A stretch of DNA of 64,000 nt, taken from assembly GCA_965655095.1 (NCBI GenBank), contig OZ296649.1, forward strand, positions 65,286,001 through 65,350,000. Reading direction: 5' to 3'. The stretch is from Haplodiscus bocki. Taxonomy: Eukaryota. This document shows positions 1 through 56,677 of this stretch, one piece after another. Position numbers and translations under genes: made by a program. How positions within the stretch are numbered: the stretch's first letter is position 1; each line of letters opens with the position of its first letter. Below the pieces are notes generated by a model. The model ran no database searches. It was not told the DNA's origin and was given only the letters and a program-made list of their open reading frames with translations.

Positions 1-2420
1 TGAAGAAACCAGAGTGTATCTCCAGTATCATTGATCAGAGGAGGAGGTGAGCAACCATGTTCATTGTTTGGTTGAGCCAAAGCGTAGCACTGAAGAAATT
101 TCACATTACTCAAAAGTTATTGTTCGTTTTTGTCCATTACTTTCGTCAATCGAATGCAGGTGTCAAGATCTACGCCGACATACTGCGGCATTTTTTCCTT
201 TTTCGGCCGATATTGAGAGAGATCAGTGGCGACATCTTCAATCAATTTACCTTGAACAACCCATTGTCTAATTAAAATTGGGATATCTGACCTGAAAAAC
301 ATGGCGGTTCCTTCAGCCTGGAACAAACGATTGCTAGTGATGTTCCAACGCCGTTTACGTCTCAACGAAACAGTACTCATACCACTATAAGACCCAACGC
401 TCCGAAACAGTTGATAGGTGTGGCTAGCATAATTAGCCTTCAAGCTACTCACACACGACAATGAAGGTGATACAATGGCTAATCGTTCCTCAAACAAAGT
501 TGGAATTCGTCCCAGCTCCGGATGCCTGGGGGGATGCAAGAACTGTAACGCACATCCCCTGTCATGCGCAGAACAAGTTTGCACAACCAAACCTTCTTTC
601 TCATGTAACCGCAATGTGGCAGCCACTAGAAACGTCTTTAAGCACATCAAAGGGCGCAAAAAGTCGAGTCTAGCGCCTCTGAGTTTTTTGAATGCAGACG
701 CTTGGAATGACGTGAAAGTTCTGTCTATTATGTTTACAAAATGCTGCGCTGGTATGTAGCCAGGATCTTCGATAAACGTCCAACAACCAAAAGGGCAACG
801 TATGTTTGGATACGGTTCCAAGTCCAAAGCTTCAGCCATTTCTTTTTGTCTCATTGTTGTCATTAGTTGCTCGAAACGTTTCAGTCTCTGTGTTCCATCA
901 ACAGTACAAGTGCCAAAAATACGCCGCCGATTCAAAACACGCTGGATGCAGATAGGGAAAAGGGTAATTACCCCTAGCCAATGTTGCCTTATTTCCAGGG
1001 GTAACAGCGAGCAAATAGCGACTAAACAAGCTTCTGGCTTGGAAGTATCAGAAAGGAGCGTGAAAAAAACAGCTGGCCAAGCCATTTGCCAGTTAATTTT
1101 TGGTGCAGTACAATAGTCATAACAGAAACAACACAGATGTACGTTATCGTTTTTCAGCTTCCTGCCGAACTTTCTATTAACCAATCCAGCTTTGCTGTAG
1201 GCCTTAATGTCGAACGGAAAATATACCGTGGCTTGACGCATGCACTTGCAACAAATGTTGGCAGCATCGACAGTATCTGTCACAACCAATTTTGACTCAG
1301 TTTTAACGGTTGATTCTTCAGTCAATTCCGATGATGGAACAAAATTTTCAGTTATTTTCAGTAAAATCTCATCAGTCAACTCGCCTCCAGGCAATCTGTG
1401 AAACTGATCTTGTCGATGTTCCACAGCAGTTGGAGGACGGCCTCTACTTCGCGTTGTAGTATTTTCTCCATCACAAAGAGCTTCTGCCAAACAAAAAGAT
1501 GTCACAGCTGTATTAGTTTCTCTATCGTCGATCAAATATGTGGCGACTGGATATTCTGAAGACCGTCTGCGCTTCTGCAACGGCTCGGTTTCATCAAGTG
1601 CTGCAAGCGCTGTCTGGATTACGTGGCAGTGAGTATTCATTGCTGAATTTGCACATTGACTACTCGAACCAGCAACATCTTCTGATAGGAGTGATGAAGT
1701 GTGGTATGTTTCGGTCAAGCCACTAATTACCTCAAAGTGATCTCCAGTTCGCGTTTGTTGAATGAAAACGCCTTGTCTGTCATTTGAGCAGTCGCATTTG
1801 TAAACGAACCAATTTTTCAAAAGACTGTGGTATACATAAACGTCCAATTTAAAAATTTGACAGAAGGTATATATTTCAGCACAAGTGCCAAAAACTCCAT
1901 TTTCTGCCATTTGCGATGTCTGCAGGTAGTGGTTGACAGTTGGACTGGTGAGAAGTTTGTTCTGGTTGGGGAACTCAGCGGAATAGATAGAAGTTTGCAA
2001 ACTGTTTTCCGGAAAGGTTACCGAGTCCATGTTACTCACAATATGTTTCCTCAATTCATGACCACTTTCATGAGAGAAACCGATAGCTACGCCCAGGGCA
2101 GTGAAAAGACAATTACCATCACCCGTTATTTTAAGACTCTGCGAGGGTTGAACAGAAGTGAGGCGAATGTTAGTTTTATTCACAATTATGCCGCTTGTTG
2201 GGGAACAGGATAGTCCCATCGCTTTCAACGTTGATTCTATGTGCAGGGTATCAACAGACGAGACCAGCAAATTACTATCAGCTATACTGTACAAAATTCC
2301 TAATGGTTCGCTGGTTGAAGAAACATTGTCAGTGGTATTTGGACAGGAGTGATTACGTTCACTGAAGCGTCCACATTTTGCACAGCGACGTCTTTTCAAA
2401 TCACTCTTGCCAGATGGCAT
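1..2420 (-). pseudogene. RepHel polyprotein N-terminal part (CCHC finger + OTU), copy A1, with premature stop
   Basis: ATG at 2420 (MPSGK..). GAA->TAA nonsense at 117-119 where A2 reads KNEQELL. The frame continues to the window edge. Confidence 0.85.
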
Positions 2421-2618
2421 TGCTCTTTCACAACAAACTTCGCTCAAAAGTTTATCAATAACTCATCTTTAATAGTGAATACAATGTACAGAGTAGGCGC
2501 CATTATAGAACCAACGTACAAAATGACATCGTTTTGCTCGGCTTTCAAACTGTTCAATTAACGGTAGCATCTAATTAATTCGAAAAAAGTAGTATCCAGA
2601 AAAATACATGCAATGTGG

Positions 2619-2656
2619 GCCTTGGTTTTGCGCAGTTAACGGAGCAAAACCAAGGC
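2619..2656. promoter_or_regulatory. 13-bp inverted repeat with 12-nt spacer upstream of RepHel (A1)
   Basis: GCCTTGGTTTTGC-N12-GCAAAACCAAGGC. Also at 35369-35406, 52319-52356 and, with 2 mismatches and a different spacer, 17767-17804. Regulatory role is inferred. Confidence 0.6.
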
Positions 2657-5600
2657 ATTCATCAGAGAATGAAAACAAACAGGTACTTACTTGGAGAGGC
2701 GGCGATGTAATGAGTGTTAATTGCGAATCTTGTGTTGTTTAAAAATCGTATTTAAGAAAATAATTTCCGTTCGCCCATACAAGTGGAACGCATCTCGATG
2801 TTACGGATTCCCGTAAATTAGTAGTGTACATGGCGAGTTCTGTCAAGTTTTTTTCCACAATCCTCAGTAAAAGAGACTACAATGCACATCACAATGGTTC
2901 TTAGAAACCAACAATGTTCAGTTGGAAAAACCAACTGAGAACGCATAAGTGTTGAGCGAATTCATACGGATTTCGAAAGGTGTTTGGGAAAACTGTGCAC
3001 TTTAGCAGGGCTGCAAGTTAACCTAAGAAGAGTAATCATGAAAAATGAGGAGGCAAGAAATGGAGAAAAAAAGTTTTCCGAGATCTTACTATTAATTCAG
3101 GCAAACTAAAATTATGCCCTATTCTTTATGACTGAAGTCTGACACGAGGTGAAAATTGACTCCACAGAAAAATATCATCACGTAGAAAACCCGAAATCCT
3201 AACAAATTAGAGAACTATGTTTAAAAGATTCTCACCATCTTGTTTTTCTCTTAGTAAAATCTTGGCTTCCAAAATCATTGCATGATACGGAAGTTATGGA
3301 AGCTGAGAAAACCAGGTGATTCAATTGAGAAAACAACTGCTTGGAGCAGAGGTTGATCAATAAAAATTCAATCAAAAATATCGACAGCGTTTATGTAAAT
3401 GCTAAAAATGAAACATTCAAGTTGATTATTGTACAAAGCAGATGGGATTTTTGACAGTTGAAACAAGAAACAGCAAGAGGCCCTCTTTTTCCCCCGCGAA
3501 AAAACACGTTAACAATTTTACCTTGTCAAAGTTTCATTGGAACACCTGAAGAATGTAAACTTTCAGTATTTGCCGAAATTTATTAAAATTGTCGTCAAAC
3601 AGAAGTCGTTTTCTTATAAGTGCGTCACAAAGTTGATCCACAGTCCCATGCGTGGTACTTCCACGCCACAGATAACACACAGTTTGCTATGAATGTTGAG
3701 GCAGTACTTTCCACCAAAAAGTATTTTCCACTAGCAAGGCTTTTCGCTAACATCTGCACAAAACGCGTCCGAATCCAGACAGTGTTGTCGGAAAAGGCAA
3801 TTTTTTGCGGTCAAAACTATTGATAATATGATCTGAATTACGGTCATTCGATCTTGAATTTCGCTCCAAAAATGGTAAAAACGATTGAGTGGTTGATCAC
3901 ATGGAAGATGAAACGAAACTCACAGGCAACACAAACATGAAGATTTTTCAATAGCAGCAACAACACGATGAAATGACGCACACACTGTCAAGTTTGTCAG
4001 AAACCTATAGGTAATGTAATTCTGCGAACATGCACGTTAACACTCCGTAGCTTTTAGGCGGTAGAGGGGTAAAAAACTAATGAAAACATTTTCTCCGTAG
4101 CAAAACCATTAGCTTGCTCAACTCTGAGGAGCCCGTTGACACTGTTCGTTCAATGCCAATCATCTTTGGAATCCATCGGTATAAATTTAAAGTTACGATT
4201 ATGTTGTACACTTTTCAATTTTTCTTACGCCTCTCATGCTCCATCAGCCACATTAGCAATTCATGTAGGATGATAACAGCGGAGTTCCCCTTTGGAATTC
4301 GGAAATTGTGGAAGAATACCCAGTACTCAGTCAACGATTCTTACAAATATTATCCATCATTCTTCGTTCAGGAAAACGTCAGTTAAAAAAATTACCCGAA
4401 ACAATTAGCTCAATTTATCGACAGAAGCCACACGATGTTGACCATAGTCAGTTGAGACTTCAGTGAGCCACGATTCACAAGAGGAAAACTTCAAACGATC
4501 GAATGACATAAGAAAAGTGTCTACTTCAGAGGGTTCAAATGAGGGATGGGAAATTGGCAAAGTCTAGTTGACGCTAAAGAAATTATGATTTCACATCAAA
4601 ACGCTTTATACAAAAACTAACTTCGGCAATAGTTGAGAGGAATAACACTTTGCTATATTTCGCACGTCCGCGGATAATTTTTTTGACAACGAGAAGCATT
4701 ATTTCACAGAAAAATCAAAACTTACTTTGAAAAAAGTTCGAAACTCCCATATGTAGGCTTCAGAACCAACCAAATATATTCTTGCGAAAAACTCAGGTAA
4801 AAGAATTCGTGAAACGCGACAATTTTTGAACGGTCTGTAGAACAATAAAATCTTCAAAATCGGAAACACCCAACAACGACATCAAGAGTAAATAAGCATC
4901 GTTTCAACTGTACACATTACCTCCACATATTGTTGGAGTTGCTTACACTAACCACATTTCATGTTGGCAAAAGCTCAAAAAGTAGATAATCGAAGTACTG
5001 CTTTCAAGAGTTCAAAAATGAAAGGCACATATTTAATCGACTATCAGTACTGATCCGCCATGAAGTTGGCCTTTATCTTGTCATAATTTATGGTTGAAGA
5101 TTATTTGGTGAAGCCAACTGTCTCAATTCAATGATGATTATGACTATTAACTTTTCTCATCTTTTTGTTTTCCAAAAGCATCCAACGTTCTATATATGTA
5201 TTTGGACGACGCATGAATAATATTGTTACATAGTGGATGAAATGTCATGGCGCAGAACTTCCTATTCATAAATTTTCTAGTACAGAACGCCTAACTGTAC
5301 ATTTTCATGTTTTGAAAAATTCAACTGATGTGAAATAGCACACAACACTTATATTGTTCCTCTGAAGCACAAAGGAACGCAACGAGAACCATGAAGAATT
5401 GCTTCAAGTACATGACTCATTGCGCAACCAATAGATTTTTTTAAAAAAAGTGGATTAACTAAATGGAACGGAACTGTCCTGAAAACGTCCATTGTTATGG
5501 AAGCCGGTAACGGGTAGGTCTCCGGAGATATATTTCAATTCAGCAGCTGATAAAGTGGAAAATTTGTTACTTTACCGTTCTGAGCTGACTTCCGGAAAAA

Positions 5601-5901
5601 ATCGACCGGAAAGTACGTTTGCCATACTTCATTGCTGGTGTATGAACTTAAAAAAAACCAGAAAGATTACTATAGGTTTTGAGGAACATCCTCACATTTA
5701 CGGTGTGAGACGACCTCTGTACGTATCAGTTGCATCCGCATTGTGCGAGTTAATCTTCAGTCTGGAGAAAAGTATCGTAAAAAAAAGAACAAACAACAGT
5801 TTCCAATTATATAAACAAAAATTTAGATTCCGAACCAATCACCAGAATTGATACAGAAATAGAAAACTGAAGGCAAAAAAATCCCGCCCTCTAGTAATTT
5901 G

Positions 5902-5926
5902 CACCGTTGCCTCCACTGGGTGGTCA
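5902..5926. repeat. Junction motif J1 (A1|B)
   Basis: CACCGTTGCCTCCACTGGGTGGTCA. The left flank equals that of J4 while the right flank is a different subfamily. Confidence 0.9.
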
Positions 5927-6497
5927 GGGGTTTTTGCCCCATATCAGGCCTTTGCGAGGCGGGGGAGGGGCCCCTTTGCCGAGCCGTTTTAGTAGTTAGT
6001 GTTTTACATCTGTGGAAACGGGGGTGTAGAAATAGCGATCTCAGCTCCCACCCATACGATTTGGTTCAAACTTTGTATGCAGGCATACTTTACAATTCTA
6101 AGAACAATGGTGCGGGTTAGATCATTCTAGCAAAAATGGTTGAGGAATTATGACGGGATGATTCTGTTTTTTGGCCCTTTTTTGCAGTTTTTAATCGACA
6201 GCCTTGCAACTAACCACATGCATTTGGCCGAAACTTTTTGTGTGAAGCACATAAACTGTGACCTATACGCATGCGAAAAATTTTCTGCCAACTCGTCATA
6301 GGTGTGGAGGTATGACGGATCAAAGTTGGAAAAAAATGCCGAAAATCGATCATTTCGTCATAGCTCCCACATTGAAGTACATAGTTTGCGCTCTGGAGCG
6401 GCTCCATTGTGAAATTGACTCCATAACTTGAAAGATAATTTTTTGACGATAAAAAATTTTTGGCCAAAGTGCCGAAACAAATGACGGTTATGACGAA
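5922..6497. repeat. ~570-bp 3'-subterminal block shared by all units (also ~20659-21227, 21713-22283, 38680-39247, 55627-56201)
   Basis: Alignable in all five units, from GAGGCGGGG..GCCGA through CAAACTTTG to ATGACGGTTATGACGA. Contains iterated (T)ATGACG motifs. Confidence 0.85.
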
Positions 6498-7549
6498 TTT
6501 TTCGAAAAAAAAATAAAAATCACAAAAAATCAAAATTTGCCGTAGAATTTGATTATGACACTTAAACAGGCGCATAGCGAACGTCGGCAGGAAAATTTAG
6601 CTTGCTATGTTTTGAAAGCAGCTGTTCCTTTAACAAACAAATTCAAGTTTGATGAGTTTCTGGGAAGGAAAACAGAATTTTTTTCCGAACGAATCAAAAT
6701 TTCACCCGCGAAAGTGTTTTAACTTTCTCAAAAAGTTTCGCACCATTGTTGTCAATTTGTAGGCAGTAGGTTCCCAGCTGTTACTTTGTGAAAACAACCT
6801 AAATGAAGCAAATGAACCTGTATAGACTTCAGAATAAAACTTCTCTAAAATTTCGTATAAAAGTTTGTTCCCATTCTTCTGTTGGAGAAAATTACAACAC
6901 TTTCTGCTTCTTTTCCTTTTCCCTGTTTTACAAAGCGTTCACTGTATCAAACGTCAAGCAACAAACTGAGAGAGTGCACTGAGCCCGATAAAAGAGCAAG
7001 ACATCGTTTCAAAGTTCAAAACGTTCGGTGATGAACGGATAGTAATGTTTAACATAACAAGAAAGAAGTTCATTGCATAAAATGAAAAGTTCACAACTTC
7101 TACACGAATCAACAATCCACATTCAAAAGCAACACGAATTAGCACAATGTTCTAAGCTACTGAAAGACATAAGTTTACAGAGAGAAGTCGTCGGCAGTTG
7201 CAAACTAATTTCCATTGTTCAACAACAACTAATTTGACATTAGTGTTCACAGTTCTACAAAAACCAACAATTAACCTTTAGGTACTGATAAGTACTGGAA
7301 AGTTAAACTTTATCATAAACAAGAGAATAGAAGCATAGGTTTCAAGATTGAAAAAAGCAGGAGAACAAACTTTGGTATGAAAGAACGAGGACAACATTAA
7401 TTTTTTTTTCCGAAACCTGTTACTTTGTGCATGTTTTTTTCAGCAACCACCTTGCGGTCGATTGCGAAAGGAGATGTTGGTTTTGAAAACCTGCAAGCAG
7501 TTCACGCGGTGGAGAAAGAACGGTCCTCTGAAGAGTAGGTCTAGATCAC

Positions 7550-8560
7550 CTATCGTACGTCGTTCGGATTGTTAGGAGCACCGACGTTAGCATTCGCATG
7601 CTGCAAAGCTGAGGGTTCATTGCCAATATTGGCGTTGCATGGCACAATGTTGTACTTCAAGTTAAAAGGCACTTCAACGGCAGGCGTAATTTCGCAAATG
7701 CGGGCACGTTGTACGTTTTGTGCAAGATTTTCGTCTGTGGATCCAGTTTTGTAAAATCCACGTACCTGCCACCCTCCATTCTCATTTACAAATTGGGACA
7801 CCTGGTTAACAGCATTCCGCAGTTGTTGTGAATTGATTGATGCATATGAAGTTCTAATAATAGCTTCGCTGCAAAACATTTTTGTCAGGTTAAGACTGTG
7901 TAATATTTCTCCCGTGAGGGAGTCTTCGTCTTCATTTTCGATGTCACGACTGATAATTCGGGCGCACATTACCCAAGCGGAAACAGGAGATTTCTGTATA
8001 CAGGGGCATACAGAGTCAATTCGATTTTCTCGTCTGTCACACATGAAGCCTGAGCAAGTTGGAGCCACAGCACTTGCTTGTAAGAAGGTGAGGGGTCTGT
8101 TTGGCAAGCAAAAGTGAAACATTGCTGTCGTTGATGAATGGAGATCTATGGGAATTGGCAACAATGGAATATTGTTAATCACGACTTCCAAAGGAAGAAA
8201 GACATGGAAAATGGGATTACTGCGATCATTGCCGCGAAAAGAGTTGGAGAACACAGGTTCTTTGACGTCCACAATTGACCCTACTGTTAACAGAGTGTCC
8301 CCGAACAAAAAATAGCTTTTCTGTGTAGACTCCGCAATCACAGCAAAGCATTCTTTCGAACTGATCTCGCCTAGTATGACTAATCGATCATAGCTGGTAT
8401 CGAGGGCACCTCTCTTGTTTTTGATATTCTGCGGTCTAAACAACTGCAAAGGTTTGTCATTTTTCTTAATAACTAGAACGATACCTCTGACGAACGTATT
8501 TTCGCTTCGACGCAAAAAAAATGTAGCTGTTACTTGGGAGGTGTTGACTTGAGTTGTCAT
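7550..8560 (-). CDS. Accessory protein of element B (336 aa), possible tandem OB-fold/Zn-ribbon ssDNA-binding protein
   Basis: Intact ATG-started ORF, full-length homolog of 23040-24053. Conserved C-x4-C...C-x-C cluster (PTCSGFMCDRR...CPC) and NGGWxVxGFYK. The fold is inferred. Confidence 0.8.
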   Translation of the reverse strand: MTTQVNTSQVTATFFLRRSENTFVRGIVLVIKKNDKPLQLFRPQNIKNKRGALDTSYDRLVILGEISSKECFAVIAESTQKSYFLFGDTLLTVGSIVDVKEPVFSNSFRGNDRSNPIFHVFLPLEVVINNIPLLPIPIDLHSSTTAMFHFCLPNRPLTFLQASAVAPTCSGFMCDRRENRIDSVCPCIQKSPVSAWVMCARIISRDIENEDEDSLTGEILHSLNLTKMFCSEAIIRTSYASINSQQLRNAVNQVSQFVNENGGWQVRGFYKTGSTDENLAQNVQRARICEITPAVEVPFNLKYNIVPCNANIGNEPSALQHANANVGAPNNPNDVR

Positions 8561-9409
8561 AGTCTGAAATCAAAAGTGGTTGAGGCTGCCTGAGAACTGA
8601 ACAATTGGAGTATTCAAAACCATGCTTTTTACTTTTTTTAAAGATTCTGTGAACGCAATTTCCGTTAAGGTTCCTTACAGTCAACAGGCAAGTATTTTCG
8701 GTTTCAAGCAATTAATACAATGAAATAGCGCTACTGCTTCAAGTAAAGCAACCTGTTTTTCAAAAAAAAGCATGACAATTCATCAATTATTCAGAGTTCT
8801 CAAGACTTCTTCATCATTAAGTTCAATTATAAAAATGTCATGTTACAATTACAGTCATCTTACGGTTCAACGCATCACGCTTTGTCGATCAGTAACATTT
8901 AAGGCCATAGAAAAAAAGGTGAGCAATGCATTCGAATACACCGTTATTAAATCGGTTTTTTCCGTCCACAGAACTTGTAGAAAGTTAAGGTTAATAAAAT
9001 ATATTTTCATTGCAGATGTTCCACAACTGAAGTTTAATACGTACTCAAAGCTACACAAAGCAAGAAAATTCAACTAATCAAAAATGCTGAACTAACTACA
9101 GGAACAAAAATTCTAAACTGTTCATCTGGTGCATATTATCGAGGGCACAGAAGGGGCAATACCAGCTGACATTTCAAAATGCGACAATCTACAGCCGTAG
9201 CAGTCAGTCGAGCCGAAAATTTTTCGTCAGTAGTCCTATGCTGAAATTCGCAACACTGTGCAGTCGATGCAAATATATACAAAAGATTGGAAGAGAACTC
9301 TGTCAACGCTTCACTATGCAGTCGAAGCAGTTGGGATCCAACGCGTACGCAGAAACATTGTGCATAACAGAAAATGGTTTCAACAGTTTTGTCAGAATGG
9401 ATATTGCGA

Positions 9410-12400
9410 TCACCCTGGCTTTAAACAGGCAGTGGGTTCACCACTACATACAATAAGTTTCAAACCGTCTTCTTTGTGCGGCCAAGTTTTTGCGATGTCT
9501 TCACCTAAATTGATGGCTGTGAAGAGTGATACATTTTTCTTTTTGAGATTAACGTAGTTCGATGCTGCATCCAGCCATTCTTTCTCAAATACGCGGACTC
9601 TATGAGACGCATTGGTTAAATTGAACCCAGTTACATAGGCACAAACTTTCCAGGGCAACCGATTTGTAATTTTTGTGAACTTAGAACCTAACCCAGAATT
9701 GTGTTCCCTCAGACGACGCACCAAGGACATAGTGGAGCCAATGTACAACAGCTGACTTTGTGGGACACTCTGCAGCAAGTAACAGAAACCCAAGTTTTGG
9801 GTAGGTAGGTCACGAGTTGATGGCGGAAAAGGCGATGCTTTGGCATGATAAACTGTGGGATCGCGCGCAGAACTTTTTGTCAGAATTTCATTAGTCAGCT
9901 CAGCCCACTGTGATTTTTTGCGGACTAAGTCTAAAACTGCTCTTCTATTCTCCTCCTTCGTGCCCACAAAAGTGACATGGTTCAAACTCCGTACCCTGCT
10001 CATAACCACATACAACTGCTCAGGAAGCCACAAAGCAAAATCTCGTGACCCCACTATTTGCGTCGCCACCATCGGCAGAGTTTCGCCCATGGTCTTGTGA
10101 ATGGTGGACGCAACAAAAAGCTTTAACGGATACTGTATCCTCCTGCACACTGTTTTATGGTTTAATCGGAAGGCTACACCAGTTTCCTTGCCAATAACAA
10201 CACACCTCCAACTGTTTCTGATCACAGAGAGTGGCGGGATATTTCTGCAACCAGCTGGAGCAAGAGCAACTGTTAGGGTACCATTTTCAATGGTATCCAA
10301 AGTCAGGAGGACGCAAAATTGACCTTGATATGCTGATAAGGATGGTTTGTTGACAGTTAATCGCATAATAGCACCGGGGTATAGAAAAAGTGATTGGGGC
10401 TCAAGGCACTTTTTGTTCAGGAACTTCGACGCTGTTGCAGACGCCTCACTCCAGTTGTCGGTGCTCGAAACGCACATTTCGTCGATGGACGCACTTTCAA
10501 AGTATTGTGCTCTGCTGCATTTAACTTCAGTGATTTTATTCTCGGTTGCTTTCCGTTCCGCTTGTCTAGTAGCAAAAATTCGAATTCTATCGTTCGGCAC
10601 GTCGTTCCACGATTGTACAAAAGTGCAATCTTTCTCCATAATTTTCCAAATTTTTTCTGCATTGGCATCTGTTTTAGGCGTTGCTGATAACAATGATAAC
10701 AGTTCCTGGCCGTTCTTGTTCCGCATTCGGACAAAATTTTTCAAATTGTGGAAAGCAAAGGTTGTTAAAGGAAAAGAGGAACTCATCAAGTAAGATCCAG
10801 AGGGCGGAGGAAGTTGAAAGAAGTCACCAGTTGCGACAACGAGTTTTCCGCCGAAAGGAACATAATTTGCTGTGACAACTTGCAAAACATGATCTGTCGC
10901 TGCCCAAAGCTCGCTAGATATCATCGAAAGTTCTTCAACGAAAATTACGTCTAAGTGCTGTAAAACTCGGCTTTTGATAGGAGATCGTTGTAAATTGGAC
11001 AGAGCCTTCTTCGAAAGTGATTCTGCAGAGCAACATTTTTCAACTGGAAATGGTATCAAAGCATTCAGATGTTTTCCAGCTAAAGCAGCAGATCTTTCAG
11101 CTGCTATGGATGTCACCACACAATGCTATCCTTGACATAAGGCGTAAGCAAGAGATTTCAGCATCACAAAAGTTTTGCCGCTTCCTGGTGGACCGAAAAC
11201 AATCTGATGTCTTATGAAAGTGCAATGTCCTCGTTTATACATGTCTATTGAATTAATGAGTTCGTCCAAAACTTGACGTTGCTCTAAATATGAGTTTTTA
11301 CTTTGATCCGGGCTCTTCTGTAAAAGTGGCTTCCAAGGCACTGGAGTATTGAAAGTGGCGTCGATCATCGTTTGCTCTGCAGGTAATTCAGTCTGACATG
11401 TCTGAAGGAAAGCTATCATTTTACACTTTTCCATAGCCAGTTGAATTGTGACTGTTTCTTCGCATTCCTCCAGGACGCTTTTGTCGAGAACAGGTGGTAA
11501 AGCAGCAGCAAAAAAGAGATTGTTTATCAACAGTGCCTCCGATATGACACTATGGGCCATTACCAAGTAAGTGTCAATCAATTTAGATGACCCTGGAGTG
11601 AAGCGAAGCTGTTCCAGCAAATACTTCTTAGCTATTTCTTTCACTTCGCCATCAGTGACGGTTGAGTTTAGCAAAATACCCGCTTTTATGAAAGCTTCTT
11701 TGAAAGTTTGGACGTTCAAGATGTCCAACTCAGTGTCAAGTTTCCCGACGGTCAGTAACAGATGAAGTAAAAACTTTGTTGGGTTATTCGGTAGACTGTT
11801 GCTGAAAACAACAACGGCCTCTTCTTCTGACAAGTTTTTCCAATGAGCAACGAACTGAGAACTGTTCTTGTTTTCAAGAATGGGAACAATGTGTTTCCTC
11901 ATTTCGCGTTTCAAGATCTGATTCCGTTCTTCACCAAACTTTTCTTGACAGAGACTTACGAAAGAGTTAACAGCAGATGGGCGCAGTTTAACCAAATATC
12001 CAAGTGCATCAACCCAGCAGCTTTTACGTAAACCTTTTTTCAAGAACTTCTCGTGATTGCTAAGGCAGTTTGTTCTTCTGGGTTTCCAGCGCACAAACCA
12101 GCTGTAATAGTCTTTTAACTGCGATACGAACAAAAGTTCCGGCGGCCTCAGTCCAAAAACAGTTACCTTGTCAGGAGAAATGAAACTGTTTTCAACATCT
12201 GCAAGGAGGAGGGTTTGACTTTTTGTAAATTGTCGAAGTTTTGGGAGTTCCAATAATTCTTTTCGCACACGGATTCCATCAGTGAAAGTGGCGCTGAAAT
12301 TCGGAGACTTGTGAAAACGTTTCTCAATTACAATTCCTGAACGATATTCTTTGGGAACTGTAGGCACATGTACAAAGTCAACATTTGTGCAGACGTAAGG

Positions 12401-17480: not shown

Positions 17481-17766
17481 GTTTTGCTTTTTGGTTGCAG
17501 GTTTGATTGCACAAAAAAGGGAAGCAGCATGTCAAAATTTACCAAACCTATTTGAAACACAAAAAAAAATTACAGAACCCAGATAATTGAAGCCGCCAAG
17601 GACCCATTTGCGACAAATAGAGCTCCAGAGGCTGCTATAAATTCGACATACAGACTGTGATATTTATTCCTTTCCGCATTTCAAACCTTTTTGAAGTTTT
17701 TAGGAAAGGACTGTTTCCATAACGGTTACAGTTTCCATTGCGAATTGAATAATGAAAAACAGAAGC

Positions 17767-21712: not shown

Positions 21713-21717
21713 GGTCA
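21693..21717. repeat. Junction motif J3 (mini1|A2)
   Basis: Exact 25-bp motif. Confidence 0.9.
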
Positions 21718-43096: not shown

Positions 43097-43577
43097 TTCG
43101 ATCTGCAGAACATTGAAAAGCAACGACAAGGGGCGAAGACAAAAAAAACGACAAATAATGATTCCAACAGCATAGGTACACTATGATGGAACACACAAAA
43201 CAACTGTCATTAGCATTATGTTGGAGTATAAAACGCAAGAGCTGAAAATAACTTTGTTCAAAAAGCTCTAATTATTTATTTGCTCATTTGAGTATGTCTG
43301 CTTTTTGGTATAGAATTAATGTTTTACCAAGTGTTTCACCTTGCGGTCGAAACAGGAAGAAGTACAGGGCTTTTATCATACATTATCTGGGAGTATATCG
43401 TTATTAGGACATACAAAAAAGAAAGTGTTCGACAAGCATACGCTAAAAATGCAGTGCAAGAAGTTAAATTTACTAATCAATCAACTTTAAATACAGTGGG
43501 CAATCAGGAACGTTCATTGTTAAGGTGCAGTTTATGAAAACCTAATGTACTTATTTTAAGGTTCCAAAAAGCATGTT

Positions 43578-43626
43578 GTGCAGCAAAGTGCAGCATAGAA
43601 AAGTGCAGCATGGAAAAGTGCAGCAA
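43578..43626. repeat. Micro-tandem expansion of GTGCAGCA (4 copies)
   Basis: A single copy occupies the equivalent site of A2 (~26653). Confidence 0.6.
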
Positions 43627-44038
43627 ATTCTTTTCCGCAAATGAATAATGTCGAGAAAGTTTTGTATTAAACTTACTTAAACGTTAAACTCAATGGAAAA
43701 GAGTACGTTGGCTCAATTTTCTGCAGAATACTCTCAAAGACATCACAAATCGAACAATTGAATTGTTGTAATTAGCAAGAGAAACAACATTTAGAATTAA
43801 AAAATTCAGCGTTCTTTAAACGCAACAAAAAGCAAAAACACACATACGAAAAACTTCATACGTGCACCTCTCGAAACCACCGGACAAATTGAAGATATAC
43901 GTTGGACGTTTAAATATTCACTTCAGGTGTTGATTAAATAATGAACTTCAAGTTTTTTTGTGAGAAGGCATTCACTTGGTCACATTTCACAGTCGACGAA
44001 TCATTTGATAAGTAGTTTGTGAGTGTTTCTCTAAGGTA

Positions 44039-47000: not shown

Positions 47001-50000
47001 ATGTTTGTGCAAACGTACGGCAACTGCAAAGCCCACCACAAGCATTCAGTTATGCTAACAATTCTGCCCGTTACAGATTTGCGTTTATCATCATCCTGAC
47101 GTTTTTTGGTAACGCTGGTTTGGACTCCGGCGATTTTTTCGTTCACAATAGGTTCTGTTTGGACTTTCACTTCATTCTCACCAGCAGAGGCTAATATCTT
47201 TGTGAACGCCCGACCTTCCACACCGGCAGCATACTTTGCAACGTATCGTGAACACATTTCGTCGTCACAAATTTGGACGTTCGTACTGCTTTCCGTGAAA
47301 GCAAACAACGCAGCATTTGTTGGTGACATGTGTTCATTCTAAGCAGCAGGGTAGTGATGTTTTCCAGCTTTAAGTTCTTCTTCAACTTTGTCTGTTGAAG
47401 AGTTAGGGTCAATATAGGACAATTTCATGCTTCTCAACAAGTCCCAAGTTTCTTTCGAGTAATTAGGTTGTATTTCTTTAAAAGAGAACCCAACTGATGC
47501 AGGATATTTAGGTACCCTACACACTGGCTTTCCCAACCAATCAGTTTTCTTTTTACATCTATTTTTTCCCTTGCCACAATCGTGCCGTTGGTATTTTTGG
47601 AAAAGTTCTCCCAACCGGAACCGTTCGCTATCCGATAACGCTGGACAGCATTTGCTTAACCCGCCCATGAATGTTTCTTTTGAACAGCAGACTCGGGATT
47701 GAACTTCCGGACCAAACTTGTTTTCTCCGGTACACACTAGTGCATGGATGTGTGCAAAGGCCGAAGTTTCGTCTTGCCACTCGTATCTCATCCATAAGTG
47801 AGAGATTGGTCCCAAAGGTTGCTCGGCCGAACTTTTCAACCATTGCATTACATACTGTGAGGCGCGATGCCAACATCTAAGCATAGGCATTAATTCACTT
47901 TGTATTACAGATAATCTCAGTTCTTTGGATGTCATATCGGGCGGGTAAAGTTTGTCAATAGCCTGAAAAATTTTCCGCAAGCCAGGGTGAGTAGATTGCC
48001 CACATGTGTATGTTACAAAATAAGTGGTGTTTTTATCTCTAATGAGTGCTGCTACTTCGCACACATTTTTCCGGGATTCTGCACAATCAAACTTGAACGT
48101 TTCATCGGAAAAGTACTGGTAATTAGTAGGCGTACTGCCCAATTCTTGCCAGCCTCTGTTCAACACAATTCGAATATCAGTTTTACTCAGTTGTAAGTTT
48201 AAAAGACAGTCAAAAACGAACTGAAGATATGATGTGTGACTGGAGGTTAAAAGCGACCCATCAGTGATGCGAGTTCGTAGCATGTTCTCTAAACCTGCAA
48301 ACCCCACTTGTTTGTTGTATCTTTCGGATTGGAACAGGGATATTGGAATTGCTCCATCAATGCTGCCATCGTAACTTTGGGACCAGAAAATAGAAGGAAA
48401 AAGCAGCCCTTCCGGTTGAAGCAAAGGCGTTGATGATGTTGAAGAAGCTGTAATGTTTTCCATGAAACGTTTCTCCTTAACGGTCAGGGAAATGGGATGA
48501 CTTTTTTTCCTGTAAAGTAAGTTGCATCGAGAATTCAACAGTATGTGGAGAGGAATATTGTAGTCTTCTTCTCTGAAAGCCTCTTGTACAGCAACAATGG
48601 CCCTTTCACCGGAACACACGTTCAATTTATTCATCGCCAATTCACTTTCGCTGATCGAGTTTGCGTTCATGTTGTTGCACAAAAAAGAAGCTATTGAGGA
48701 TGAACTTGAGTTTTGACTTGAACAGTTGATGGATAGATCTGGTTCAACAACGCTTTTGTCCTGCTCACATAAACTACTTAAGTTGGAATTCAGTTCACAC
48801 TGTGTAGCAATGATTGCAGCTTCAGCGGTCGGTTTTTCAGGCGTTAATTTTTGTTCTGCTGTAGGTCGAACTAAAACTCGTAAGTTTGGATGTTTCATTC
48901 CCTCGTCGAAGTGTTTCTTACACACACAACTGTTGCATTTTGAGTAGGCACATCTGAGGAATGATGACCTTCCACATCGACAGAAGTAGTTGCTACGTCG
49001 GAAGTCCCTCGTTAACGGAACATCATGTTTGTCACAAATGAAAATTCCTTGACCGGTTAAATTACTAAGATAGTGCCACTTTACAGTCGACACGTTTTTA
49101 GAGTTAGTTCCTCGGTAGATTAAAAAAGTCCAGTAGCCTCGTAGAATTTTTTCTAGTAAGGTCTCAGGTGAGTCCAACAAAGGTTCAGCAAACTTGTTAG
49201 CTTTCACTATACGCCAAAAATTGCAGAAGCGACCACCGTGCCGAAGCAAAATTACAGCATCTGTACCCCGAGAACCACAACCACATCCCACAAGCTCAAA
49301 TTGGACATCAAATAGGAAGACGTTGAGAGGTGGGTTGACCTTGTTCCTCAGATTATTTACATCAGTTGTTGTAGCGATCACGTGTTTCGTATCCACGGTA
49401 ACGTCGCGCAGAATTTTTTCAGTTAATTCTTTTCTTTGGCTCAACTGAAGATGGCATAAGTCAGCACATAATGCGTGCAACACCACGCAACCCGCCTAAA
49501 AAAAGTTTGAAATCATGTTTGGCTTGTCCTTGTTAGTCGCCGCGTTATTCAATATACTGTCAATGTCAGCTTGAGCTTGTGAAATACGCTGCAACTTGCT
49601 TTCTTTTCCAAACCCAGCAAATGTATGACGCAACAGTGAAAACAAATTTGTTGCGAAAACGTGATTAACGCCAGACACCATGGATGAACATAAAAATGGA
49701 GATATGCAGCATGCTGCTTGAAGAAACCAGAGTGTATCGCCAGTATCATTGATCAGAGGAGGAGGTGAGCAACCATGTTCATTGTTTGGTTGAGCCAAAG
49801 CGTAGCACTGAAGAAATTTCACATTACTCAAAAGTTCTTGTTCGTTTTTGTCCATCACCTTCGTCAATCGAATGCAGGTGTCAAGATCTACGCCGACATG
49901 CTCCGCCATTTTTTCATAATCCGGCTGATATTGAGAGAGATCAGTGGCGACATCTTCAATCAATTTACCTTCAACAACCCATTGTCTAATTAAAATGGGA

Positions 50001-52138
50001 ATATCTGACCTGAAAAACATAGCGGTTCCTTCAGCTTTGAACAAACGGTTGCTAGTGATGTTCCAACGCCGTTTACGTCTCAATGAAACAGTACTCATAC
50101 CACTATAAGACCCAACGCTCCGAAACAGTTGATAGGTGTGGCTAGCATAATTAGCCTTTAAGCTACTCACACACGACAATGAAGGTGATACAATGGCTAA
50201 TCGTTCCTCAAACAAAGTTGGAATTCGTCCCAGCTCCGGATGCCTGGGGGGAAGCAAGAACTGTAACGCACATCCCCTGTCATGCGCAGAACAAGTTTGC
50301 ACAACCAAACCTTCTTTCTCATGTAACCGCACTGTGGCAGCCACTAGAAACGTTTTTAAACACATCAAAGGGCGCAAAAAGTCGAGTCTGGCGCCTCTGA
50401 GTTTTTTGAATGCAGACGCTTGGAATGATGTGAAAGTTCTGTCGATCAAGTTTATAAAATGCTGCGCTGGTATGTACCCAGGATCTTCGATAAACGTCCA
50501 ACAACCAAAAGGGCAACGTATGTTTGGATACGGTTCCAAGTCCAAAGCTTCAGCCATTTCTTTTTGTCTCATTGTTCTCATTAGTTGCTCGAAACGTTTC
50601 AATCTCTGTGTTCCATCAACAGTACAAGTGCCAAGAATACGCGGCCGATTTAAAACACGCTGGATGCAGATAGGGAAAAGGGTAATTACCCCTAGCCAAT
50701 GTTGCCTTATTTCCAGGGGTAACAGCGAGCAAATAGCGACTAAAGAAGCTTCGGGTCTGGAAGTATCAGAAAGGAGCGTGAAAAAAACAGCTGGCCAAGC
50801 CATTTGCCAGTTAACCTTTGGTGCAGTACAATAGTTATAACAGAAACAACACAGATGTACATTTTCGTTTTTCAGCTTTTTGCCGAACTTCCTATTAACC
50901 AATCCAACTTTGCTGTAGGCCTTAATGTCGAACGGAAAATATACCGTGGCTTGACGCATGCACTTGCAACAAATGTTGGCAGCATCGACAGTATCTGTCA
51001 CAACGAATTTTGACTCGATTTCAACGGTTGATTCTTCAGTCGATTTCGGTGGTGGTACAAAGTTTTCAGTTAATTTCAGGAAAATCTCATCAGTCAAGTC
51101 ACCTCCAGGCAATCTGTGAAATTGATGTTGTCGATGTTCCACAGCAGTTGGAGGACGGCCTCCATTTTGCGTTGTAGTATTTTCTGCACCACAAAGAGCT
51201 TCCGCCAAACAAAAAGATGTCACAGCTGTATTAGTTTCTCCAATGTCGATCAAATGTGTGCCGACTGGATAATCTGAAGTCCGTCTGCGCTTCTGCAAGG
51301 GCTCAGTTTCATCAAGTGCTTCAAGTGCTGTCTGGATTACGTGGCAGTCAGTATTCATTGCTGAATTTCCACATTGACTACTCGAACCAGCTAAATCTTC
51401 TGATAGGAGTAATGAAGTGTGGCATGTTTCGGTCAAGCCACTAATTACCTCAAAGTGATCTCCAGTTCGCGTTTGTTGAATGAAAACTCCTTGTCTGTCA
51501 TTTAAGCAGTCGCATTTGTAAACGAACCAACTTTTCAAAATATTGTGGTATACATAAACGTCCAATTTAAAAATTTGACAAAAGGTATAAATTTCCACAC
51601 AAGTGCCAAAAACTCCATTTTCTGCCATTCGCGATGTCTGCAGGTAGTGGTTGACAGTTGGGCTCGTGAGAAGTTTGTTCTGGTTGGGGAATTCAGCGGA
51701 ATAGATTGAGGTTTGCAAACTGTTTTCCGTAAAAGTCACCGAGTCCATGTTACTCACAATAAGTTTCCTCAAATCATGACCACTTTCATGAGAAAAACCG
51801 AGGGCAACGCCCAGGGCAGTGAAAAGACAATTACCATCACCCGTTATAGAAAGACTGTGCGAGGGTTGAACAGAACTGAGGCGAATGTTAGTTTTATTCC
51901 CAATTATGCCGCTTGTTGGGGAACAGGATAGTCCCATCGCTTCCAACGTTGATTCTAAGTGCAGGGCATCAACAGAGGAGACCAGCAAATTACTGTCAGG
52001 TATACTGTACAAAATTCCTAATGGTTCGCTAGTTGAAGAAACATTGTCGGTGTTATTTGGACAGGAGTGATTACGTTCACTGAAGCGTCCACATTTTGCA
52101 CAGCGACGACTTTTCAAATCATTCTTGCCAGATGGCAT
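44039..52138 (-). pseudogene. RepHel-GIY-YIG gene of element C with two in-frame stops
   Basis: Q->TAG at 49496-98 and Y->TAG at 47339-41, no frameshift. Walker A is altered (AVPPGTGKT), as is motif III (TVDFFQLPP). Confidence 0.9.
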
Positions 52139-55100
52139 TACTCTTTCACAAGAAAATTCGCGCAAAAGTTTATCAATAACTCATCTTCAATAGTGAATAC
52201 ATTGTAAAGAGTGGGCGCCATTATAGGACCAACGTACAAATTTTTCAAAATGTTCAATTAACGGTAGCATCTAATGAATTCGAAAAAAGCAGTATCCAGA
52301 AAAATATATGCAATGTGGGCCTTGGTTTTGCGCAGTTAACGAAGCAAAACCAAGGCATTCATCAGAGAAAGAAAACAAACAGGTATTTACTCGTAGAGGC
52401 GGCGATGTAATGAGTGTTAATTGCGAATCTTGTGTTGTTTGAAAATCGTATATAAGAATTTATTTTCCGTTCACCCATACAAGTGGAACGCATCCCGATG
52501 TTACGGACTCCCGTCAATTAGTAGTGTACACGGCGAGTTCGTTGAATTCGAAAGTTTTTTCCCCAATCCTCAGTGAAAGAGACTACAATGCACATCACAA
52601 TCGTTCTTAGAAGCCAACAAGGTTCAGTTGGAAAAACCAACTGAGAACGCATGAGTGTTGAGCGAACTCAAACGAATTTCCAAAGGTGTTTGGGAAAACT
52701 GTGCACTTTAGCAGGCCTGCAAGTTAACCTACAAAGATTTATCATGAAAAATGAGGAGGCAAGAAATGGAGAAAAAAAAAGTTTTCCGAGATCTTACTAT
52801 TAATTCAGGCAAACTAAAATTATGCCCTATTCTTTATGACTGAAGTCTGACACGAGGTGAAAATTGACTCCACAGAAAAATATCATCATGTAGAAAACCG
52901 CAAAGCCTAACAAATTAGAAAACTATGTTTGAAAGATTCTCACCATCTTGTTTTTCTCTTGGGAAAATCTTGGCTTCCAAAATCATTGCATTATAAGGAA
53001 ATTATGAAATCTGAAAAAACCGGGTGATTTAGTTGAGAAAACAATTGCTCAGAGCAGCGGTTGATCAATAAAATATCAGTCAATAATGTCGACAGCGATT
53101 ATGTATATGCTAAAAATAAAACATTCAAATTGATTATTGTACAAAACAGATGGGATTTTTGAAAGTTTGAAACAAGAAACAGCAAGAGGCCGTCTTTTTC
53201 CCCCGCAAAAAACATGTTAACAATTTTACTTTGTCAAAGTTTCATTTGAACACCTGAAGAATGTAAACATTCAGTATTTACCGAAAGTTATTGAAATTGC
53301 CGTCAAAGAGAAATCGTTTTCTGATAAGTGCGTCCCAAAGTTGATCCACAGTCAGATGCGTGGTACTTCCATGCCAAAGATAACACACAGTTTGCTATAA
53401 ATGTTGAGGCAGTACTTTTCATCAATAAGTATTTTCCGCAGCTTTTTCGGTAATATCTGCACAAAGCGCGTCCGAATCCAAACAAGGTCGTCGGAGAAGG
53501 CAATTTTTTGCGGTCAAAACTATTGAAAATATGATGTGAATTATGGTTATTCGATCTTGAATTTCGTTCCAACAATGGTAAAAACGATTGATTGGTTTGT
53601 TCACATAGAAAATGAAACGAACCTCACAGGAAACACAAACATGAAGAACTTTCAATGCCAGCAAAAACGCGATGAAATAACGCACACAATAACAAGTTTG
53701 TCAGAAACCTATAGGTAATGTAGTTCTGCGAACATGCACGTTAACACTCTGTAGCTTTTAGGCGGTAGATGGGTAAAAAATTAATGAAAACAATTTCTCC
53801 TCCGTAGCAAAACCATTAACATGCTCAAATTTGAGGAGCCCGTTTTCACTGTTCGTTCAATGCCAATCATCTTTGGGATCCATCGGTATAAATTTAAAGT
53901 TACGATTATGTTGTACACTTTTCAATTTTTCTTACGTTTCTCATGCTTCATGAGTAACATTAGCAATTCATGTACGATGATAACAGCGGAGTTCCCCTTT
54001 GCAATTCAGAAATTGTGGAAGAACACCTAGTACTCAGGCAACGATTGTTACAAACAATATCCAGCATTCTTCGTCTACGAAAACGTCATTTAAAAAAATT
54101 ACCCAAAACAATTGGCTCAATTTGTCGACAGAAGCCATACGATGTTGACCATAGTCAGTTGAGACTTCAATGAGTCACGATTCACAATATGAAAAGTTCA
54201 AACGATCGAATGACATGAGAAAAGTATCTATTTCGGAGGGTTCAAATGAGGGATGGGAAATTGGCAATGTCGAGTTGACGCTAAAGAAATAATGATTCCA
54301 TATCAAAACACTTTATCCAAAAACTAACTTCGGCATGAGTTCAGAGGAACAACACGTTGCCATATTTCGCTCAACGGCGGATATTTTATTTTGACAACGA
54401 GAAACATTTTTTCACAGAAAAATCAAAACTTATTTTGAAAGAAGTTCAAAACTCCGATAAGTAGGCTTCAAAACCAACCAGATATATTCTTGCGAAAAAC
54501 TCAGATATAAGAATTTGTGAAACGCAAACAATTTTTGAACGGTCTGTAAAGCAGTAAAATCTTCAAAATCGGAAACACTCAAAACCGACATCAACAGTAG
54601 AGAAGCATCGTTTTAACTCTACACGTTACCTCCACATATTGTTAAAGTTGCTTCCACTAACCACATTTCATGTTGACAAAAGCTCAAAATGTAGAGAATC
54701 GAAGTACTGCTTTCACGACTTCATAAATGGAAGGCACATATTTAATCGACATCAGTACTGATCCGCCATCAAATTGGCCTTCATCTTGTCATAATTTATG
54801 GTTGACGATTATTTTATGAACACAACTGTCTCAATTCAATGATGATTATGACCAGTAACTTTTTCTCATGTTTTTATTTTCCGGAAGCATCAAACATTCT
54901 ATATATGTTTTGGACGACGCATGAACAATATTGTTACATAGTGGATGAAATCTCATGGCGCAGAACTTCTTTTTCATAAATTTGTCTAGTACAGAACACC
55001 TAACTGTACATTTTCATGTTTTGAAAAAATCAACTGATGTGAAATAGCACACAACACCTATATTGTTCCTCTGAAGCACAAAAGAAGGCAACGAGAACCA

Positions 55101-55606
55101 TCAAGAAATGCTTCAAGTACATGACTCATTACGCAACCAAAAGATTTCTTTGAAAAAAGTGGATTCAATAAATGGAACGGAACAGTACTGAAAACGTCCA
55201 TTGTTATGGAAGCCGGTAACGGGTAGGTCTGTGGAGTTATATTTTAATTCAGCAGCTGATAATGTGGAAAAATTGTTACTTTACTGTTCTGAGCTGACTT
55301 CGGGAAAAAATCGACCGGAAAGTACGTTTGCCATACTTCATTGCTGCTGTCATGAACTTAAAAAAAAACAGGAAATTTACTAGGTTTTGAGGAACAACCC
55401 CACATTTACGGTGTGAGATGAACTCTGTGCGTATCAGTTGCATCTGCACTGTGCGAGTTATTCTTCAGCCTGGAGAAAAGTATCGTAAAAAAAGAACAAA
55501 CAACATTTTTCAATTATATAAACAAAAATTTAGAACTTTGAACCAATCACCAGAATTGATACCGGAAAAAAATTGAAAGCAAAAAAACCCGCCATCTATT
55601 AAATTG

Positions 55607-55631
55607 CACCGTTGCCTCCACTGGGTGGTCA
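55607..55631. repeat. Junction motif J5 (C|mini2)
   Basis: Exact 25-bp motif. Confidence 0.9.
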
Positions 55632-56677
55632 GGGTGATACCCCACAAACAATCTGCGCGGCCGGGAAGGGACCCGTTTGCCGAACTTAAAATATAGTGCG
55701 TAGCAAATAGTATCCGTCCGTAGGGGGGGCTAAATAAGGCGATCTCGCGTTCCAACCATTAGATTTTGTTCAAACTTTGCATGTGGCCATAACTTTTAAT
55801 TCTAAGAATTTTGATATAGGTCCCGTCATGATTGATTCATTGGGGGAGGAGTTATGACGGAATGATCGTCATTTTTGGCCCAATTCCGAGATTTTTTGGC
55901 CGAATCTCCACAAGTAACCATATGCATTGGGCTAGCGTTTTGTGTGTGAAGCATTTCGAGTGTGGGTTATCCGCATGCAAAAAATTTTCCGTCAACTCGT
56001 CATAAAAGTGAAGATATGACGGGTGAAATTGAAAGAGAATTCGAAAAAAATGATCATTGCGTCATTTCTCCTTTGTCGAAGTATCAACAATGACATCTAG
56101 GGCTGCCGGACAGCGGAATAACTTACACCAATTGAAAGAAATTTTCCCGACGACAAAAATTTTTTGCTCAGAATGACGAAATAAATGACGGTTATGACGA
56201 AAGCTTGACCGCCACAAAGAAAAAATGACGGTTATGACGAAATTTTCAAAAATAAGAAACTTCATAAAACTTTATGTTTCAACGTGTAGAAAACAATGAA
56301 AATAGTTACATGTGATGTACACAAACGTTTATTGATTTTCTAACGACTTTTATAACTCATTGGAGTTGGCTTTTTTTGTGAACCACAGCTTTTCTCAAAG
56401 ACGGATTTTCTTTTCAAATTTGATATTTCCCGTTGTTCGGGAGATCAGCGGGCAGCTGATCGGAAGAACAACGGGCTCAGACCACAAAAAAAGCAATCGG
56501 TGTGCAATGGTCTCTTTTGCCGAGGGGAACACAAAACAGTAGAAGACTCAAAAGCAAAAACTTAAACGTCAAAACTCATAGATCAAACTTTCCTTAAATT
56601 GAACAATTTGTTTTCACGGAAATAAAAACCTACGGTAAAGCCTCCTCTGGTAATTGGTACCCTAGCCTCCGCTGGGT
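55627..56677 (-). mobile_element. Non-autonomous mini-element 2 (1051 bp), last unit of the array
   Basis: Starts with a divergent (more B-like) 570-bp block and has a hairpin at 56429-56475. Ends in a degenerate terminal motif TCTGGTAATTGGTACCCTAGCCTCCGCTGGGT. Confidence 0.72.

Follow-up and report, generated by a model that had tools for sequence, protein, structure and literature searches.

Helitron-like transposons joined at a single point in mixed arrays of the Haplodiscus bocki genome

In the accepted view, Helitron-like elements need no more than a dinucleotide as target and become dispersed across the genome, and their tandem arrays are regarded as concatemers of one donor. Here, we describe arrays of such elements in the animal Haplodiscus bocki, starting from a 64-kb stretch of its genome (GenBank assembly GCA_965655095.1, contig OZ296649.1, positions 65,286,001 to 65,350,000; hereafter the window, numbered 1 to 64,000). 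We found that units of many families are joined right terminal sequence (RTS) to left terminal sequence (LTS) at exactly one point, in one orientation and with nothing between them, and that young copies, although nearly identical to one another, are flanked on both sides by unrelated units. Judged by their sequence, the units are Helitron-like rolling-circle transposons, with autonomous units of 15-17 kb and non-autonomous derivatives (minis) of 1.05, 1.25 and 1.43 kb. We are highly confident that a junction-specific joining reaction made by an enzyme builds these arrays. We also consider it probable that this reaction is site-specific insertion into resident joints, catalysed by the Rep protein of the elements. 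In the open-access literature we searched, we found no account of a rolling-circle element that inserts at joints of its own kind or forms arrays of mixed families, and such targeting is undescribed there for Helitron-like elements.

One joint shared by units of many families

The window contains no runs of N. By self-BLAST, positions 1-56674 form a seamless chain of six units in one orientation that ends at 56674^56675 (carets mark joints). Inspection of the window's joints found no filler DNA and no target-site duplication at any of them, in agreement with the original prediction that six units abut without host DNA between them. All large open reading frames (ORFs) of the array lie on the minus strand. 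Because the genes are on this strand, the side of each unit that carries the junction motif is its 5' end (head, LTS), and the "570-bp block" of the original prediction is the 3' end (tail, RTS).

The units, all on the minus strand, begin with A1 (1-5918), which is cut by the window edge, so that only the 5' portion of this autonomous A-type element is present; from its head at 5918 it reads leftwards. Next comes unit B (5919-20655; 14,737 bp), which has copies elsewhere that are 99.5-99.9% identical and have other neighbours. It is followed by mini1 (20656-21709; 1,054 bp), a non-autonomous unit that combines a head with a 41-nt hairpin and a beta-type tail block and is 93% identical to units of locus L123. 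The remaining units are A2 (21710-38676; 16,967 bp), an apparently intact autonomous element, the A-like unit C (38677-55623; 16,947 bp), which is 90-93% identical to A2, and mini2 (55624-56674; 1,051 bp), which has the head CAGCGGAGGCTAGGGTACC and belongs to the 1.05-kb mini family.

A 25-bp motif, CACCGTTGCCTCCACTGGGTGGTCA, occurs on the plus strand at 5902, 20639 (with one mismatch), 21693, 38660 and 55607 and at no other site in the window, where none is expected by chance. Each occurrence spans one joint between minus-strand units. J1 (5902-5926, cut 5918^5919) connects the tail of B to the head of A1 and reads ...TGACCACC^CAGTGGAGGCAACGGTG on the coding strand. J2 (20639-20663, cut 20655^20656) leads from the mini1 tail to the B head, J3 (21693-21717, cut 21709^21710) from the A2 tail to the mini1 head, J4 (38660-38684, cut 38676^38677) from the C tail to the A2 head, and J5 (55607-55631, cut 55623^55624) from the mini2 tail to the C head. 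At the array end, J6 (56653-56686, minus strand, cut 56674^56675), non-element DNA ending in ...CGTTACACAACC is joined to the mini2 head, CAGCGG..., and homology with other minis ends at 56680. The sequence at 56653-56677 had been taken for a degenerate copy of the motif; it is instead the intact head of a mini family, 87-89% identical to 1.05-kb units elsewhere.

The five positions of the motif stand as predicted, but 25 bp overstates what is recognised, which is a core of ~10 nt plus the RTS hairpins described below. The motif is made of 8 nt of RTS and 17 nt of one head superfamily (CAGTGGAGGCAACGGTG), and it seems invariant in the window because its five heads belong to that one superfamily. 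Only ~10 nt, G(A/G)CCACC^YAG, are common to all junctions. The Y base tracks the type of head and the three bases before CACC track the type of tail (GAC, GGC, GCC, AAC, TTC, CCG). This places the joint between CACC and YAG, although the four invariant bases leave its position formally ambiguous. A1 (1-5918) and A2 (32751-38676) are 98.8% identical up to the motif, and the upstream tails that adjoin them differ and do not align. The original prediction had described the two as having the same right ends followed by different subfamilies, which is correct except that the "right end" is the 5' end. Similarity between B and A is limited to the last 1.9 kb of B (74%) and its first ~570 bp, in plus-strand orientation.

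Our comparison covers further loci, including 25 (L123, L126-L150) from a second assembly of the same organism (ERZ26859043) that were found by exact look-up of protein sequences encoded by the units. Junctions were searched with the pattern ACC^YAG plus a GC-rich hairpin. Over all loci, this census yielded 106 instances in 94 distinct contexts, all in one orientation. The 94 junctions represent 40 combinations of 19 tail clusters with 17 head clusters. Positions -5 and -4 are C in 94/94, although the search pattern imposed neither.

Young families show how freely these partners are combined. The B2 family consists of a 17,017-bp unit with an intact gene for a 2,685-aa OTU-Rep-PIF1-GIY-YIG protein, and our sample includes at least nine copies, with identities of 99.4-99.96% among them. 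Nine B2 copies match at 98-100% across the last 1,000 nt ahead of the cut, identity drops to ~50% in the 600 nt beyond it, and BLAST alignments of 12.6 kb at 99.8% identity stop exactly at the last C of GACCACC, before YAG. The B2 tail is followed by at least seven unrelated heads; those starting with CAG are B-type, A-type, two mini types and L002-type, and three others start with TAG and have no further similarity. On the other side, nine B2 heads are preceded by at least five tail types, with homology starting 10 nt before the cut. The family of the window's unit B behaves in the same way: three copies whose accessory proteins are identical are each followed by a different head, and additional copies of B (99.5-99.9% identical) adjoin still other partners. 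Neighbouring units are often from unrelated families (~50% identity). Host DNA adjoins none of the sampled copies of these two young families, and all of them lie inside arrays. Two checks proposed with the original prediction thus came out in its favour, since none of the sampled copies is a solo insertion and no breakpoints are scattered along the 570-bp block.

The layout of the window recurs in the second assembly. Contig ctg78179 (72.5 kb, ~72x) is colinear with the window over 1-18560 at 99.989% identity (L128) and over 34039-57329 at 100% (L150). The matched 41.8 kb include J1, J4 and J5 directly, plus J6 and the flank; J2 and J3 fall between the compared stretches. The coverage of ctg78179 lies within the 34-134x of other contigs and corresponds to about a single copy. 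The second assembly may share the same underlying reads.

The junction rule is not restricted to this organism. It holds in the assembly of a second organism (ERZ25074608), whose Rep is 59% identical; L001 contains five joints, and others lie in L124, L151 and L152. A 17.3-kb metagenome scaffold (L002) has joints 17,087 bp apart, and the rule also holds in metagenome loci L037, L040 and L092. These three were the only relatives among the 120 loci returned by a metagenome scan with GACCACCYAGYGGAGGC, nearly all of which were chance matches.

Element ends and encoded proteins

Each RTS finishes with ...G(A/G)CCACC and each LTS begins with YAG, either CAG or TAG. The RTS block has a double CGTCAT at its start and then single copies at fixed distances of -560/-570, -390 and -230 from the end. 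These iterons are phased, and 204 are present in 81 tails compared with ~14 expected. In the tail of B (RTS block 5919-6497, minus strand), they lie on the coding strand at 6490-6495, 6481-6486, 6312-6317 and 6150-6155. Closer to the end, at about -62 to -40, is a hairpin whose stem sequence varies by family while pairing is kept and CCCT is conserved in the loop. Examples of stems are GGCaaaGGGG with CCCCcGCC, GCCGCtaCCGGG with CCCGGGCGGC, GGATTCaGG with CCGAATCC, and CGCGGG with CCCGCG; the covarying hairpin of the B tail, also with a CCCT loop, is at ~5958-5980 (minus strand). This covariation was read from DNA folds of individual sequences. RNAalifold on a MAFFT alignment of the tails returned 3 pairs only, as indels misalign the stems. 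A second short hairpin adjoins the terminal (T/G)G(A/G)CCACC, and in the B tail the hairpin GGGGcaaaaaCCCC abuts TGACCACC. On the LTS side, the mini families have a hairpin of 41 nt whose first base is the C of CAG, immediately past the cut. With a paired RTS hairpin, phased iterons and an LTS hairpin at the cut, the ends look functional. With regard to terminal inverted repeats of the type found in HLE2 (Helentron/Helitron2) elements, only a weak complementarity, judged by eye, is present between the head GAGGGCGGG and the tail CCCGCCTC. We considered CCAC-CCA-GTGG, which spans the joint, as a nick hairpin and rejected it, since it is not conserved in TAG-type heads.

A2 encodes an intact transposase of 2,707 aa (27074-35197, minus strand) with OTU, Rep, PIF1 and GIY-YIG domains. 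Its OTU protease motif is GDGNCLF. The Rep domain contains FFTYTC, PHIHAL (the HUH motif) and RYVAKYAAG (YxxKY, with two tyrosines), and the last two are conserved across 15 homologues. This domain matches Pfam Helitron_like_N at E 2.4e-5, which is under the gathering score, and is weakly similar to the Rep of a fish Helentron (BLAST E 0.007). The PIF1 helicase, C-terminal to Rep, has the motif GAPGTGKT and matches Pfam PIF1 (E 1.4e-11), PIF1 chains in the PDB (E 5e-11) and Helraiser (E 2.7e-4). The GIY-YIG nuclease is nearest to SLX1 (PDB 4xlg, E 3e-6). A1 retains a piece of the Rep ORF (117-2447), and the Rep genes of B and C are broken into five ORFs (9410-17480) and three ORFs (44039-52165), respectively, all on the minus strand.

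Downstream of Rep, every autonomous unit carries an accessory ORF of 336-355 aa with conserved cysteines in a C..C, C.C pattern. In A2 it is 355 aa long (23040-24107) and in B 336 aa (7550-8560), and another lies at 40215-41027, all on the minus strand. The accessory protein matched no Pfam family, and an AlphaFold (AF2) model built from 7 sequences was unusable (predicted local distance difference test score, 32).

Relatives of the transposase are abundant in public protein data. The Rep-helicase core of A2 (27848-31330, minus strand) found 317 clusters (50% identity) at E<=1e-30 and 3,234 at E<=1e-3, most of them 2,000-2,800 aa long and unnamed. The clade defined by this core is large in public data and apparently unannotated.

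How the arrays may be built

How could units of unrelated families come to be joined at one phosphodiester? We propose that Rep nicks single-stranded DNA at CACC^YAG, with the RTS hairpins and iterons setting its position. To this enzyme, a resident joint (or an RTS end) and the joint in a free circle would be one and the same substrate. The two tyrosines would cut both substrates, hold both 5' ends and exchange the 3'-OH ends, and an incoming unit or run of units would be spliced into the resident joint in a fixed orientation, with no bases lost or gained. Such splicing would be an intermolecular version of the reaction that closes the circle. Replication would then make the complementary strand, and the SLX1-like nuclease is a candidate for nicking or resolving the second strand. 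A start at one joint and a stop at a later one would move several units, which fits the recurrence of blocks. Every insertion would yield two new joints, and arrays would in this way grow on themselves and spare host genes.

This proposal extends the original prediction that incoming elements integrate at the termini of resident ones and so give mixed arrays. The prediction is supported by 94 junctions at one phosphodiester, with block duplication as an additional contributor. That Rep recognises its own end as a target, and that the GIY-YIG nuclease has a part in the reaction, we infer only, and the idea of a "safe harbour" is plausible as a consequence of self-targeting. The array end J6 reads AACC^CAG, with ...ACAACC before the first head, and this single case hints that entry into naive DNA may also need ...ACC. 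On balance, we lean towards an even broader interpretation, namely that the elements form a cassette system of eukaryotes comparable to integrons, driven by a HUH Rep to which an SLX1-type nuclease is fused. Each CACC^YAG joint would then serve as origin, terminator and attachment site, autonomous units and minis of many families would be inserted and excised as single-strand circles, and the family would live almost wholly in its own arrays, as a strictly self-targeting lineage conserved across hosts.

Several findings weigh against Rep-catalysed insertion into resident joints. An empty-site search among the fetched loci, for a directly joined pair of the tail and head that flank a B2 copy, returned trivial self-matches only and no empty/filled pair, so insertion is inferred from the diversity of contexts. 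Array segments also spread as blocks, as in L138 and L139, whose entire array is present as a colinear duplicate at 96.7%. Since block duplication occurs, some junctions are inherited and not each is an independent insertion. An assembler could mispair the upstream and downstream contexts of 17-kb copies that are 99.8% identical, in which case single junctions would be safe and the pairing of both sides of a copy less so. Short-read contigs from Logan (k=31) break inside the motif and neither confirm nor refute the junctions. The search pattern may under-count deviant joints, and the evidence on array ends comes from J6 (n=1). Finally, relatives with 35-50% Rep identity (L124, L125, L151) have no CACC^YAG joint at their own ends, in elements whose termini could not be defined.

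The joining itself might take place elsewhere. Rep could join heterologous units outside the chromosome, and ready-made mixed multimers would then be integrated or exchanged as blocks. Such multimers could arise on circles, by a start at one joint and a stop at the joint of another element, or by read-through of several units. The joints would act as both start and stop signals for a rolling-circle Rep, and rolling-circle plasmids recombine at the nick site. Multi-unit runs recur, as in the joint of a B tail to an A head that is present both in the window and in L126 and in the colinearity of L138 and L139, and bypass of an end is known for Helitrons (PMC6431247). However, this route still needs site-specific entry into arrays, because the sampled copies have no flanking host DNA, and single 17-kb B2 units bounded by unrelated units in several combinations fit single-unit events. 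We think extrachromosomal joining unlikely as the source of the arrays; it differs from insertion at resident joints only in the place of joining.

Explanations without a dedicated joining reaction fare worse. An old tandem array could have been reshuffled, as satellites are, by unequal crossing-over, gene conversion and segmental duplication between shared blocks. Block duplications do exist, neighbouring minis of one family are 86-96% alike, and the spacing of A1 and A2 (32,750 bp) is the sum of A, a mini and B. In L123 (1014-5786), a tandem duplication of 3,175 bp (97% identity), in which the first mini breaks off at 2626, 50 nt short of its tail end, reads as an ordinary rearrangement with its breakpoint away from the joint. 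However, unrelated partners have 7-10 nt in common at the joint, too few for homologous recombination, and the breakpoints of 94 junctions fall at one position and are not spread over the 570-bp block or the heads, which together exclude homologous unequal crossing-over. Copies that are 99.8% identical over 12.6-17 kb adjoin sequences that do not align, and subfamilies only ~70% identical are interleaved with copies 98.8-99.9% identical to others elsewhere in the genome. Satellite-like evolution is therefore largely refuted, and we regard it as very improbable. A higher-order repeat, (A-mini-B)n, was likewise rejected as a full explanation, since L002, L126, L127-L139 and L143 show other orders. 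Concatemers made by rolling-circle replication of a single donor and later diverged in place are scarcely credible for the arrays as a whole. Helitron concatemers are documented (PMC5148889, PMC11934779) and runs of one mini family do occur, but neighbours are often unrelated, and divergence in place cannot explain why decayed units flank an intact element whose copies at other sites are 99.8% identical to it. This origin is refuted for the mixed parts of arrays, while homogeneous runs of minis may still have it.

We also find it extremely unlikely that assembly has misjoined repeats at their shared motif. The break of k=31 short-read contigs in the motif would fit such an artefact, as would the circular flag on one related contig, ctg68648. 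That contig (30,691 bp) holds ~1.8 units with a period of 17,017 bp, and the flag is probably itself a tandem-repeat artefact. A B2-B2 joint on the same contig (L130, 12600-12660) lacks exactly the 29-nt core, TCCCCTGACCACCCAGTGGAGGCGACGGT, relative to L135, a deletion that we count among the ordinary rearrangements. Against misassembly, the two assemblies agree over the 41.8 kb that include J1, J4, J5, J6 and the flank, at ordinary coverage, and the junction rule recurs in other samples and in another organism.

Related systems and further features

The elements have the features of Helitron-like elements in the broad sense: a HUH Rep with two tyrosines, a C-terminal PIF1 helicase, no target-site duplication, a 3' hairpin and non-autonomous copies that share both ends. 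They lack those of canonical Helitrons (HLE1), which have 5'-TC...CTRR-3' ends and insert between A and T, as their ends are YAG... and ...CACC. They are closer to HLE2 in having one giant ORF with an N-terminal OTU domain, HUH-Y2 Rep, PIF1 and a C-terminal nuclease, and in combining an RTS stem-loop with non-autonomous derivatives that keep both ends and with no target-site duplication. HLE2 elements, which have terminal inverted repeats of 12-16 nt between LTS and RTS, differ in their T-T (or T/C) target (PMC11417382), whereas all 94 junctions here are CACC^YAG and insertion appears to be confined to the joints of the elements themselves. Unlike Helentrons, the elements have an SLX1-like GIY-YIG domain, not an AP endonuclease, in the nuclease position. 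No DUF6570 or AP-endonuclease domain was found at E<=1 in the protein parts scanned; fish Helentrons P0020-22 carry both. A GIY-YIG domain in HLE2 has been noted once, in HelenSM92 of Sphagnum (PMC11417382).

The arrays share their head-to-tail arrangement, each 3' end meeting the following 5' end, with tandem arrays of canonical Helitrons in bat, maize, Arabidopsis and Metarhizium. The joint in canonical arrays equals that of the circular intermediate (PMC5148889), and tandem insertions have been reported as single-donor concatemers or rare double insertions (PMC5148889, PMC11934779). In contrast, unrelated families alternate in the arrays described here, and arrays are the only place where copies were found in our sample.

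Integron cassette arrays (attC x attI) offer another parallel. They too are polarised, contain unrelated cassettes and have a short conserved core beside single-strand hairpins, and in both systems cassettes probably move as circles, with new ones entering at an existing joint. Integrons differ in that they are bacterial and use a tyrosine recombinase, IntI, encoded outside the cassettes, and one site, attI. Here, every joint is apparently usable and the HUH Rep is carried by some of the units. Domain searches of the array proteins found no integrase, the enzyme being the HUH Rep, and we take the resemblance to be functional only.

Among HUH enzymes, the IS200/IS605 and IS91/ISCR families use single-strand chemistry with hairpin-guided cleavage and no target duplication, and they insert beside a fixed short sequence that is also required at their own end. 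Their targets of 4-5 nt are frequent in host DNA and their copies are dispersed; we know of no report of mixed arrays in these families. Helitrons of Paramecium target the host telomeric repeat (PMC13085455). They resemble the present elements in strict site preference and fixed orientation, and differ in that the target is a host repeat rather than their own junction and that their Rep belongs to a different clade.

If our interpretation is true, it would add a new targeting strategy for eukaryotic DNA transposons, in which self-made safe harbours spare host genes, and would explain how large mixed "macrosatellite" arrays can arise. It would also open a direct way to study end recognition and joining by a Y2 HUH Rep, since origin, terminator and target would coincide in ~10 nt plus hairpins. 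Moreover, an animal enzyme of this kind, splicing single strands at one defined 10-nt site, would amount to a natural, sequence-specific inserter of DNA into animal genomes and would be of interest for genome engineering.

Beyond the array, positions 56675-64000 (7.3 kb) have no similarity to the elements and are presumed to be host DNA. This flank resembles neither the rest of the window nor any fetched locus, and its ORFs had no family matches in Pfam and Atlas searches. Rfam and tRNA scans of the window found nothing, and the small ORFs between the genes of A2 had no matches. The window has only two short tandem repeats, at 43585-43625 and 56173-56242; the latter, located where the mini2 tail block has its inner edge, consists of ATGACG iterons repeated every 20 nt.

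In the k=31 contigs that match window positions 18800-23800, summed depth is ~20x higher in the bins that contain the joints and the beginning of the tails (20637-20803 and 21639-21805) than in the body of B. Sequence close to the joints is therefore shared far more widely among copies than any single body. Of the sampled words, 7% are present in a run labelled "coral metagenome".

Some relatives adjoin other repeats. A ~52-bp satellite directly follows the Rep stop codon in two loci whose Rep is 50% identical (L124, 18122-18626; L125, 18694-20098). In L151, a CACC^YAG mini array of opposite orientation (20000-26606, minus strand) adjoins the element that has a 35%-identical Rep and no such joints. 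There may be an attraction, in either direction, between arrays and other families of Helitron-like elements.

The minis fall into sharp length classes of 1.04-1.06, 1.25-1.26 and 1.43-1.44 kb (L133, L136-L139, L142, L144-L149 and the window minis), and those of the second organism are 1.07 kb long (L001). Their same-family runs, 86-96% alike, are interspersed with abrupt switches of family. Unit B is itself a mosaic. Its module of accessory gene and tail (5883-9058) is 86-90% identical to L002 and L126, its Rep region (9456-17222) is 72-77% identical, and the similarity switches at ~9058 in both comparisons, which suggests that modules are exchanged within units as well.

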